Below, piece by piece: positions 41,872 to 44,078 of a stretch of DNA of 64,000 nucleotides. Source of the stretch: Octopus sinensis (Eukaryota); NCBI RefSeq assembly GCF_006345805.1, contig NC_043007.1, forward strand, positions 33,852,001-33,916,000. Direction: 5' to 3'. Every line of letters begins with the position of its first letter. Position 1 is the first letter of the stretch. Position numbers and translations under genes: made by a program. The notes under the pieces are model-generated. The model ran no database searches and was not told the origin of the DNA. It saw only the letters and a list, made by a program, of their open reading frames with translations.

Positions 41872-43221
41872 TTATATCTGCAGTGGTAAAAATGTCAGTT
41901 GGATTGGTGATTTGGAGATGCCCAAGGGGTGGAGTGAAACACTCTTGAATTGCTCATTCAGTATTTCACTTACCCTCATTGGTTTTCCTGTAAGTGTGCC
42001 ATCCTTTTCGAGGAGTGGCCCTATTCTACAGTGCACCGTAGCTGTTTCTTTGGCATACCTGTAGAAAGCTCTGGGGTTAGATTTTATGTTGTCTATAGCC
42101 CAGGCTTCTTTGTCTGCTCTTTCTTTTTCATGGGAGAGTTGCAGACATTTTTCGATTTCCAACAGTTTTATTTTTAGGCGAGACTTTTCACTGCTTTCAA
42201 TCTGTTTGTTTAGGCGATTTGAAAATTTTGTACGCCGTCTCATTAAAATTTTCCTCTCTCTGGGGATTTTGTTCTTGTGTACAGTGGCCTTTCTCTCTGG
42301 GACACATTTGTAGCATATGGCTTGCATTACAGACATGAATTGTTGAAGTTTCACGTCGATGTCTGGCGAGGAGAGACATTTAGGCCAGTTTTGTTTGAGG
42401 ATCTCTTTCTCAATTTGTTTCCAGTTTGCCTTATGGTAGTTCAAGCTGGAAAGATTCTGAGGGTTTCTTGTAGGCTGCATGTCCGTGCTCTCTTTTGGCC
42501 CGTACATGGTCAGCTCTATCATGTTGTGATCCGAGAGTAGTGTCGGTGTCACTTTCACATTATGGATGAGATCCATGTCATTTCTGAAGCAGAGATCCAG
42601 TGTGTTACCTGCCCTGGTTGGTTGGAGTATTACCTGCTCCATGTACAGGGTGTTGATGAGGTTCAGGAGGGACCTCGCCTGTCCTCGTTCACATCTTGTC
42701 ATTCCTGGGAGAGAAAGGCCCTCGGGCCATCTGACATTGGGCAGATTGAAATCTCCCATAAGAAGTACACTTATGTGTTGTTCTAGTGTGGTTAGAACTT
42801 CTTCTATTTTTATAAGGCAGTCTTCAAACTTGCCCACATGGCTTGGGGCATCTGGAGGGCGATATGTAGCACACACAACTACATCAAGTTGCCTAATATG
42901 TACAATTAGTGTGTCACACACCGAGTTTGAGTATGACAAGAGGACCTGGGGTGTGAGGTCCTCACGGATGTACATGGCAACACCTCCATGACTCCTTTCT
43001 TTCCTGTCGGTCCGTAGTACAGCATACTGTGGTATGTGTAACTCCGCATCTGCTATGTCCGGTTTCAGGTGCGTTTCCGTGAGTGCTATGCATAAGGCTT
43101 GATTGCATGCAACAAAGTCTCTCAGGAACGGGATTTTTGTCTTGTTACTGAGTGTTTGCAGTCCTCTGATGTTCAGTAGGAGCATCGAGGTGAGGTGTAC
43201 CTTGTTGCCGGCGGTGTCCAT
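41872..43221 (-). pseudogene. LINE ORF2 apurinic endonuclease and linker
   Basis: LLNIRGL, IALTETHL, GGVAMYI, YRPP, GDFNLP, TLDL, SDHN: all APE catalytic motifs are present. Confidence 0.95.
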
Positions 43222-43568
43222 CCTGGGTCTGTTTGCTGTGGTGGTCTGGTATATAGTGGGTAGTCCCACCTGCGGGCTTGGGTTTGATGAAGCCAGGTCA
43301 GCTGCTGTACAATCTTTTGTGCCATGCACAAAAAAGATTGTTGCTCAGCAGCTGCTCTTTCGACAACATCATGTTGGTGGTTTGTGGCACGCACAACATC
43401 TGCGTACCTCCGCTTTGGGGCAAGTGGTGCGTGGTCCATCCCTTTTCCTTGTGTTGATGGTTTGTCCATCTGCCTCGTGTCTCTGTGGCAGGGTCCCCGA
43501 TGTGCAAAGCGCCAGCCTGCACCTTCCTTCCCATGCCAGCAGGAACCTCTCAGGTAGAACCTACACAC
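43173..43568 (-). pseudogene. LINE ORF1 C-terminal part with CCCH-type zinc finger (frameshifted)
   Basis: CRFYLRGSCWHGKEGAG(W)RFAH = C-x7-C-x8-[C>W]-x3-H. The reading frame overlaps the ORF2 start. Confidence 0.65.
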
Positions 43569-43649
43569 CCGTGTGCGCTGTTTGTTTCCATCTTTTGCGG
43601 TTCCACTTCTATTCCTGGTTTTTTCACCCTTTGGTCCTGCTTGAGCTTT

Positions 43650-44078
43650 TCATTTAGCTCTTCCAGTCCTTCTTTTAGTTCTTCCTCCTCCCTCTACCTC
43701 TTCACCGGGTTCTCCGTCTCCATGGCCCTTGCTGCCGGTTGGAGAACTTGCACCTGGGTTCACTTCCCGGGCAGGTTTCTCATTCAAAACCTCCTCCCGG
43801 GCGTCCACCAGGTGGGGGTGACTTCTTTCATCGTCTCCATTCTTGCCATCTTTGCCCCGCTCGTTCTCAAAGATGGCATCAAGTGCGCCAATGTGCGACC
43901 GTATAAGCGCATATGAGCGCACGAATTCCCGTCTCTTTCGCTCCATCTGAGCCGCTGTCCTCTTGTAGCCTTTGTTCTTCAGCGCAGCCGCAATCACCTC
44001 GCTAGGGCTATCTCCGTCGGCGCACTTCCAGGCTCGTACGAATAAATCTAGTTCGTCAGGTCTCCATGCTCTGGACAT
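43650..44078 (-). pseudogene. LINE ORF1 N-terminal part with Myb/SANT-like (trihelix, Myb_DNA-bind_4-like) domain
   Basis: RAWRPDELDLFVRAW...EVIAAALKNKGYKRTAAQMERKRREFVRSY fits W-x3-E-x2-L...IA-x2-L-x3-GYxRT-x2-Q-x3-K-x3-[LF]-x3-Y. An acidic coiled-coil-like stretch follows in a shifted frame (EEEELKEGLEELNEKLKQ). Confidence 0.7.

Follow-up and report, generated by a model that had tools for sequence, protein, structure and literature searches.

A decayed octopus LINE of the CR1/L2 type whose ORF1 combines a likely Myb/SANT-like domain with a CCCH finger

The locus and its ORF1

A 64,000-nt stretch of the Octopus sinensis genome (contig NC_043007.1, positions 33,852,001 to 33,916,000), hereafter the window, was analyzed. 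Segment 43173-44078 on its minus strand is the first open reading frame (ORF1) of a dead copy of a long interspersed nuclear element (LINE) of the CR1/L2 type, a decayed element of 4-4.8 kb. The segment had already been called the ORF1 of a CR1-group LINE from the sequence alone, and it corresponded to exactly two minus-strand ORF pieces in the same frame, 44078..43653 (142 aa) and 43649..43176 (158 aa), upstream of an ORF2 that encodes an endonuclease (EN) of the apurinic/apyrimidinic endonuclease (APE) type and a reverse transcriptase (RT). Along the minus strand, the order is ~87-bp monomers, a 58-nt leader, ORF1, the overlapping ORF2, a short 3' untranslated region (UTR), (AATC)n, and a TA/TG microsatellite (Table 1). 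The GC content of the element was 47-49%, compared with ~30-38% in its AT-rich, microsatellite-rich surroundings (composition bins of the window). Taken as a whole, the locus is quite probably a dead copy of an octopod CR1/L2-type LINE in whose ORF1 a Myb/SANT-like domain is followed by a disordered linker, a CCCH finger, and a helix.

The intact 291-aa ORF1 of Argonauta hians aligned with the entire window ORF1 in one frame (tblastn expectation value (E) 5e-26), and the window ORF1 was also homologous to ORF1s of O. vulgaris and O. sinensis. The frameshift correction that had been thought necessary was thus not needed: the window ORF1 is a single frame with one stop, aligned in-frame with an intact homologue. 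In the family, the ORF1 protein is encoded in a single frame of about 290-320 aa and has four parts, namely the N-terminal domain, a basic linker, the CCCH finger, and the C-terminal helix. An alignment of 22 ORF1 sequences contained three conserved blocks with unalignable regions between them. Four defects were found in the window copy: ORF1 has the TGA and a tryptophan in place of the third zinc-ligand cysteine, and ORF2 is frameshifted and lacks part of an RT motif. This copy cannot make the ORF1 protein.

The linker could not be aligned between lineages. In the AlphaFold2 model of the intact A. hians protein, its residues ~90-170 had predicted local distance difference test (pLDDT) values mostly below 50 and no predicted secondary structure. 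A coiled coil had been proposed between the N-terminal domain and the finger, so that ORF1 would consist of three modules (Myb, coiled coil, and CCCH) recovered by two frameshift corrections. The basis for such an arrangement is an open alternate frame of 47 codons at 43693..43553, rich in Glu, Leu, and Lys. However, the same bases read in the ORF1 frame encode a basic linker rich in Gly, Lys, Arg, and Thr, of a type common to all relatives, and the Myb-like domain and the CCCH finger lie in one frame with one stop. Nothing resembling the coiled-coil peptide was encoded in any alternate frame of L001, L009, L006, or L007, and the stretch is predicted to be disordered in the intact protein. The coiled-coil module was therefore rejected as a wrong-frame artifact conserved in no other copy, and the three-module arrangement is very improbable. 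An ORF1 of the L1 type was also considered; neither Transposase_22 nor RRM was matched in the window at a Pfam E of up to 10.

The CCCH finger gave weak Pfam matches in the window (zf-CCCH E 5e-3; Torus 9e-4) and in relatives (zf_CCCH_4 1e-3; zf-CCCH_PARP12 7e-4), and all octopod members were below the Pfam cutoffs. The family pattern is C-x7-C-x8-C-x3-H, whose x8 spacing exceeds the x4-5 of classical CCCH fingers. The pattern was intact in all of the four other copies checked (L001, L009, L006, and L007). The window copy itself does not retain the full ligand set, as its third ligand is tryptophan. Hence, the predicted finger stood as a feature of the family, with its spacing kept in four other copies, but not as a complete finger in the window copy. 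In the A. hians model, the finger (residues ~170-200) had a pLDDT of about 76-81.

The C-terminal block of the 22-sequence alignment read SYADAV..AA.EQ.sFL.MAQRIV.QLTWLH, and the helix ends where ORF2 starts. Residues 236-274 of the A. hians protein were modeled as a single long helix (pLDDT 91-94). In the alignment, hydrophobic residues of this helix recur at a spacing of 3-4, suggesting that it may mediate self-association or oligomerization.

Table 1. Features of the LINE copy in the window and of linked copies in other sequences. Positions of L001 are those of its own sequence. TRF, Tandem Repeats Finder.
Sequence	Feature	Position	Strand	Remarks
Window	Tandem array of about nine ~87-bp monomers, 5' of ORF1	44137..44894	-	TRF, self-BLAST
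Window	Unique 58-nt leader between array and ORF1 ATG	44079..44136	-	
Window	ORF1 pseudogene	43173..44078	-	301 codons, single frame, one internal TGA; terminal stop 43175-43173
Window	Likely Myb/SANT-like three-helix domain, ORF1 aa 3-74 (~72 aa)	43857..44072	-	Pfam, AlphaFold2, Foldseek
Window	Linker rich in Gly, Lys, Arg, Glu	43566..43856	-	Predicted disordered; holds the inactivating stop
Window	In-frame TGA	43650..43652	-	Divides ORF1 into two listed ORFs, within the linker
Window	Peptide earlier called a coiled coil, REEEELKEGLEELNEKLKQDQRVKK	43553..43693	-	Alternate-frame reading of the purine-rich linker; frame 0 vs ORF1 frame 2
Window	CCCH-type zinc finger, CRFYLRGSCWHGKEGAGWRFAH	43500..43565	-	Third ligand Trp (TGG at 43514-43512)
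Window	C-terminal amphipathic helix, DVVERAAAEQQSFLCMAQKIVQQLTWLHQTQARRW	43269..43373	-	Conserved in all full-length members
Window	ORF2 pseudogene	40241..43221	-	Likely ATG 43221-43219, 47-nt overlap with the end of ORF1; stop 40243-40241
Window	APE domain	~42517-43098	-	
Window	RT domain	~40991-41647	-	
Window	3' UTR element, two short hairpins then AAAC	40176..40214	-	Present in all copies examined
Window	3' tail (AATC)n in place of poly(A)	40148..40175	-	TRF period 4 at 40148-40172
L001, A. hians	Intact 291-aa ORF1	4529..5404		Overlaps ORF2
L001, A. hians	Intact 1021-aa ORF2	5314..8379		
L006, ENA metagenome contig	Complete ORF1, then EN			
L007, Logan contig	Complete ORF1, then EN			
L009, O. 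vulgaris OX597829.1	Intact 318-aa ORF1, then EN and RT			
L010, O. sinensis CM016876.1	ORF1, EN, RT			Same order as L009

ORF2 and the octopod family

The Pfam matches of ORF2 were Exo_endo_phos_2 (E 6.8e-12) and RVT_1 (E 8.9e-25), and the window ORF2 was collinear with the intact 1021-aa ORF2 of A. hians. Alignment with that protein placed a frameshift between the EN and RT parts at ~41923-41947 and a 5-aa deletion inside the conserved RT motif SGVPQGTVLGP near 41227. The nearest matches of the RT were a metagenome contig (67% identity) and two A. hians proteins (59-60%).

The 3' ends of six copies (the window, L001, L002, L003, L009, and L010) were compared. All six carried the motif GGYGGTGC..CAGCATGRCC followed by CAGCY-loop-RGCTG and AAAC. 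RNAalifold folded the conserved part into two hairpins; 3 of the 13 pairs showed compensatory changes, which, with only six sequences, is no more than suggestive. The tails differed by lineage, being AATC in the window and ACAAGAT, ACATTAA, AATTA, ATTTAAGG, and one A-rich sequence elsewhere. A hairpin with a microsatellite tail is the pattern of the "stringent" CR1/L2-type 3' ends. According to a 2026 survey, Zenon stands alone among CR1-group elements in having a poly(A) tail (PMC13343379). Judged by sequence, ORF2 and the 3' end are of the CR1/L2 kind, the CR1-group assignment being based on architecture and the 3' end rather than on an RT phylogeny with reference elements, which counts against it.

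A TA/CA/TG microsatellite lay at or within ~30 nt of the 3' tail in the window (40100-40147), L001 (~8480-8495), L009 (10002-10051), and L010 (10913-10982). Under a strict definition, which required a perfect TA/CA/TG dinucleotide run of 10 nt or more to begin within 15 nt of the tail, adjacency was found in 2/6 copies, against a background of 2-11% of positions; this was not significant in such microsatellite-rich genomes. The adjacency could reflect chance, microsatellite growth seeded by the tail, or a target preference.

The ORF1 family was found only by an exhaustive search. When the window ORF1 was used in a word-indexed protein search, no match was obtained at E up to 0.01, and a two-sequence alignment in the same kind of search returned one Argonauta-type copy only. 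When 1.84 billion representative proteins were scanned exhaustively in HMMER with an ORF1 profile built from two sequences, 79 matches were obtained, about 20 of them family members. Most of the others matched through the CCCH finger only and were multi-CCCH proteins or ORF1-like proteins of the PHD type. The LINE family is known so far from octopods (Octopus and Argonauta).

The sequence-only reading had asked for the Myb ORF to be linked to EN-RT in several copies. Five further loci (L001, L006, L007, L009, and L010; Table 1) carried the same ORF1 ahead of EN-RT; the window ORF1 was 30-55% identical to these copies, every alignment running in one frame. As ORF1 lies directly upstream of EN-RT in these loci, the Myb-like ORF is not a chance neighbor. 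Another origin was nevertheless weighed for the Myb-like ORF, as a fragment of a host gene, a separate element beside a 5'-truncated LINE, or a domesticated host gene. In keeping with such an origin, the O. vulgaris and O. sinensis annotations list several family members as free-standing "genes". Against this, the order Myb-like domain, CCCH finger, and overlapping EN-RT was found in six loci including the window and spanning at least three octopod species, with the ORF1 identities given above, and the window copy is mutated throughout. Moreover, the loci of at least two such annotated proteins, P0125 (an O. sinensis "gene") and P0200, run on into EN-RT. A host gene or a mere neighbor is therefore hardly credible, and we regard the segment as the ORF1 of the LINE.

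Every ORF1 family member with a name is a "hypothetical" or "uncharacterized" protein from one of two species, O. vulgaris or O. sinensis. The LINE ORF1, whole or fragmentary, is annotated as a host protein under XP_036366487.1 in O. sinensis and CAI9723961.1, CAI9734422.1, CAI9735850.1, CAI9728256.1, CAI9729350.1, and CAI9715314.1 in O. vulgaris. For annotation, the consequence is that the hypothetical and uncharacterized host proteins of octopus include fragments of this LINE ORF1.

The N-terminal domain and its place among known ORF1 types

The top Pfam match of the window N-terminal domain was Myb_DNA-bind_4 (aa 3-61, E 1.4e-3). The A. hians copy independently had the same family as its top, sub-threshold match. 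For the family consensus, Myb_DNA-bind_4 was the sole Pfam match (E 1.5e-5; 25.7 bits, cutoff 27). It was matched by 7/22 family members (E < 0.1), and no other family recurred in the domain. The strongest score in the family, 29.3 bits, came from the divergent member P0133 and was above the curated cutoff of 27. P0133 derives from a 965-bp contig of GCA_024449705.1 (L008), in which tandem CCCH fingers are encoded in a shifted frame; this contig may extend the Myb-like and CCCH architecture beyond octopods.

The N-terminal block of the 22-sequence alignment had the consensus MARNWKKEELDLLLRAWKIAEGDQPNNLITAALKNNGFKRTVAQIERKKKELLRSYALIRPHLDTLDKILKN. The third helix is basic, with the motif RT.aQIERKK.EF.RSY. 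In window numbering, Trp5 and Trp17 were kept in most members, Tyr/Phe38 and Tyr56 were conserved, and a third tryptophan was absent.

The structure prediction that had been recommended for ORF1 gave a confident three-helix bundle with helix-turn-helix geometry for this domain, of the same topology in the window copy and in the A. hians protein. The AlphaFold2 model of the window domain alone had a pLDDT of 89.6, a predicted TM-score of 0.71, and helices at residues 7-19, 25-35, and 42-74. In the intact A. hians protein, modeled with the ORF1 family as input alignment, residues 1-70 had pLDDT values of 83-98, and helices were at 7-19, 26-39, and 46-79. From the Foldseek searches, only the probability ranking and the TM-scores were used. 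Against the PDB, the structure of highest probability for the window domain was the MYB domain of PHR1 (6j4k_B, probability 0.82), which superposed with a target-normalized TM-score of 0.70 and a root-mean-square deviation of 3.0 Å over 57 columns (E about 1). The CDC5L Myb domain, the SMRT SANT domain, c-Myb R2, and homeodomains stood lower in the list. With the full-length model, the GT-1 trihelix domain (2jmw) was found with a probability of 0.51 and a TM-score of 0.57.

Several results weigh against a Myb/SANT-like fold. The window copy scored 19.4 bits, below the Myb_DNA-bind_4 gathering score of 27, and most members taken alone were also sub-threshold. Neither the full-length nor the domain model gave a significant Foldseek match (none with E < 0.9), and unrelated helical proteins were interleaved in the lists, in which calmodulin, Fur, and homeodomain folds appeared. 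Sequence searches of the PDB with a 3-sequence profile, a 19-sequence profile, and P0133 returned no Myb/SANT match; the best match was bacterial ribosomal protein S8 (31 residues, E 0.004). In the N-domain profile, the S8-like motif, I..LK.nGF.Rt..qIErKk..l.rSY, occupies positions 26-56 (window ~43911-44003). As the match spans under half of the domain and the model is all-helical, the likeness to S8 is probably a chance local resemblance.

The same sub-threshold Pfam scores, Foldseek E of about 1 with unrelated helical folds intermixed, and PDB sequence searches without a Myb match favor an alternative, namely a helical domain peculiar to the lineage, with no more than a superficial likeness to Myb/SANT, that serves in protein-protein contacts or RNA binding and does not bind DNA or chromatin. 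In addition, no outside Myb/SANT protein was recovered at E 1e-3 in the HMMER scan. However, Myb_DNA-bind_4 is the sole recurrent family, lies at the same position in seven members and the consensus, and once exceeds its cutoff. The long basic third helix with the conserved Trp5 and Trp17 also argues against this alternative, as do the MYB and trihelix structures with the top Foldseek probabilities. We regard it as unlikely. As the window copy alone was sub-threshold and the Foldseek E values were non-significant, the Myb assignment was made from the family-level evidence. The Myb/SANT-like domain claimed from the sequence thus found support at the level of the family (consensus E 1.5e-5; P0133 29.3 bits), its signal in the window copy being real but weak and below the Pfam cutoff. 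The N-terminal domain is likely, though not proven, to fold as a Myb/SANT-like (homeodomain-like) domain remotely homologous to the trihelix branch.

Distant CR1-like relatives (44-45% RT identity) and many further ORF1-like proteins of unknown context were compared with the octopod ORF1s. In one CR1-like element (L005, 3066-4813; 44% RT identity), the ORF1 upstream of ORF2 contained a PHD-like finger (PHD E 1.1e-3) and also a finger of the C-x7-C-x8-C-x3-H type. Many proteins that matched the ORF1 profile in a single stretch (P0143, P0157, P0159, P0163, P0165, and P0172) belong to a widespread ORF1-like group with a PHD- or C1-like finger at the N-terminus, between one and four CCCH fingers, and a [DN]FL helix at the C-terminus. 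Another such match, P0162, which is N-terminally truncated and lacks the PHD finger, aligned with profile positions 141-281, a range that includes the CCCH finger and the C-terminal helix. No octopod member had a PHD match in Pfam. The simplest reading of these sequences is a shared core of CCCH finger and helix with exchangeable N-terminal modules, mostly PHD and, in the octopod lineage, Myb/SANT-like. This suggests that the Myb/SANT-like module replaced a PHD module in the octopod lineage, a direction that goes beyond what the comparison establishes and is to that extent a further point against our reading. Exchangeable N-terminal modules fit the modular, reticulate evolution of ORF1 described previously (Metcalfe & Casane 2014, PMC4120745).

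In the octopod LINE, as in PHD-type CR1/L2 elements, ORF1 immediately precedes an ORF2 of the CR1/L2 APE-RT type and overlaps it; the difference is a PHD finger there and a Myb/SANT-like three-helix domain here. PHD-type ORF1 is reportedly type III/V of the CR1/L2-lineage LINEs in the 2009 scheme of Khazina and Weichenrieder. It has been described in subgroups CR1_2, CR1_6, and L2_4 (Metcalfe & Casane 2014, PMC4120745). The PHD and CCCH relatives found here are likened to these published subgroups, the identity of the two sets not being assumed.

For L2, CR1, and Jockey elements, the ORF1 domains listed are PHD, RRM, CCHC, Tnp22, esterase, leucine zipper/zinc finger (lz/zf), and coiled coil (PMC4120745 Table 1). 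Neither Myb/SANT nor CCCH appeared in the ORF1 surveys PMC4120745, for any subgroup of the Jockey superfamily, and PMC13343379. The CCCH fingers of the PHD-type ORF1-like proteins were likewise unmentioned in these two surveys. In the literature covered, whose scope excludes Repbase and Dfam, no link of Myb/SANT, Myb_DNA-bind_4, or CCCH to a LINE ORF1 was found, and a Myb/SANT or CCCH module of ORF1 was not mentioned in work on the CR1-group elements of gastropods, bivalves, and vertebrates. The suspicion that a Myb/SANT plus CCCH ORF1 is non-standard was borne out within the two surveys, both of which lack the combination. Within this literature, the element is an otherwise known kind of LINE, and its ORF1 contains a module not previously listed. 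Type IV ORF1 of vertebrate CR1 (zf/lz plus esterase; PMC4120745 subgroup CR1_7) also combines a zinc motif with an amphipathic helix. The octopod ORF1 differs in having no esterase match in Pfam, another type of finger, and the Myb-like domain.

Myb-type helix-turn-helix modules are shared with other non-LTR (non-long terminal repeat) retrotransposons, R2, TRAS, and SART. R2 has an N-terminal zinc finger and Myb domain and TRAS/SART a Myb-like domain, both of which recognize target DNA. In these strictly site-specific elements, the Myb domain is in the RT-bearing protein, whereas in the octopod LINE the domain is in the ORF1 protein and belongs to the Myb_DNA-bind_4/trihelix-like branch, any target specificity being conjectural. 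The accessory protein of PIF/Harbinger has a Myb/SANT/trihelix domain, binds transposon ends, recruits the transposase, and has no CCCH finger. As here, a non-catalytic Myb/SANT-like protein is encoded by the transposon beside a catalytic one; the difference is that PIF/Harbinger is a DNA transposon and lacks the CCCH finger. No donor sequence for the Myb-like domain was found in the 1.84-billion-protein HMMER scan. Its capture from a Harbinger element is a conjecture.

Flanking sequences and possible roles of the ORF1 protein

In the 5' array, TRF reported a period of 87 with 5.8 copies, as well as periods of 166 and 246, and self-BLAST matches reached 44894. The array is a putative monomeric 5' UTR or promoter that probably belongs to the element. 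In the intact A. hians copy, two 112-bp monomers immediately precede the ORF1 ATG, and the copies of O. vulgaris and O. sinensis have CT-rich tandem units in the same place. No homology of the 5' sequences was found between lineages, which leaves the window copy without a fixed 5' boundary. Tandem monomers upstream of ORF1 are likewise known from the 5' UTRs of mouse L1, with unrelated sequences. Repeating 5' subunits have also been described in some vertebrate CR1-group elements (PMC13343379); the likeness is in the tandem units 5' of ORF1, and the sequences are unrelated.

Since both flanks of the window copy are TA/TG microsatellite, no clean target-site duplication could be called. An Rfam scan of the window gave no match at gathering thresholds. 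A short interspersed repeat of ~110-150 bp, resembling a short interspersed nuclear element or a miniature inverted-repeat transposable element, had four copies in the window with 87-96% identity, at 40000-40105 (-), 28784-28889 (-), 7418-7524 (+), and 50904-51010 (+). Its sequence, GGCCTGCTCGCTTAGCCAGCGGGGTGGCGTC...GGTCGGTCACGTGATCACGTGAT, mostly terminates in (TA)n and had no Rfam match. The copy at 40000-40105 is just past the 3' microsatellite of the LINE. At 54053-54529 (+) lies a remnant of a Tc1/mariner-type transposase, a 158-aa ORF matching only the C-terminal part of the Pfam profile DDE_3 (E 7.2e-10). The adjacent segments 17813-18346 and 18595-19380 (-) have near-identical long low-complexity ORF translations with Ile-rich runs and then ...SYLFYVVVFFSASNPSSLSCLIFFVPIFILLSRLSPNLIQLPLAFHQLF..., which suggests that sequence rich in trinucleotide repeats has been duplicated locally. 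No bin of the window had a more extreme GC skew than 18001-20000 (+0.51).

By analogy with other LINE ORF1 proteins, the octopod ORF1 protein would package and chaperone the RNA of its element. The CCCH finger and the basic linker would bind this single-stranded RNA, and the C-terminal helix would drive multimerization of the protein. At the step of target-primed reverse transcription, the N-terminal Myb/SANT-like module would anchor the ribonucleoprotein to chromatin or double-stranded DNA. PHD fingers are readers of histone tails, and SANT/Myb domains have histone tails or DNA as ligands. The two modules, which occupy the same slot in ORF1, could therefore do the same job.

A more specific role is quite unlikely, in which the octopod ORF1 protein has gained a sequence-reading domain for double-stranded DNA that steers integration or binds the element's own 5' monomers for transcriptional regulation. 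Targeting or self-regulation had also been raised as a possibility in the sequence-only reading. Copies that abut TA/CA microsatellites at their 3' side give a weak hint of such possible sequence-specific targeting or autoregulation, not direct support. We know of no targeting or autoregulatory role of any LINE ORF1 protein.

Octopod genomes are very rich in transposable elements. Because both ORFs are intact in A. hians and ORF1 is intact in O. vulgaris, the family may still be active in octopods. The published ORF1 modules (PHD, RRM, CCHC, Tnp22, esterase, and zf/lz) are all RNA-binding, histone-reading, or enzymatic. The finding is of interest mainly to specialists in transposable elements, for whom intact copies are at hand for assays. 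A Myb/SANT-like module in the position that PHD occupies in sister lineages would amount to a natural swap experiment on the function of the N-terminal part of ORF1.

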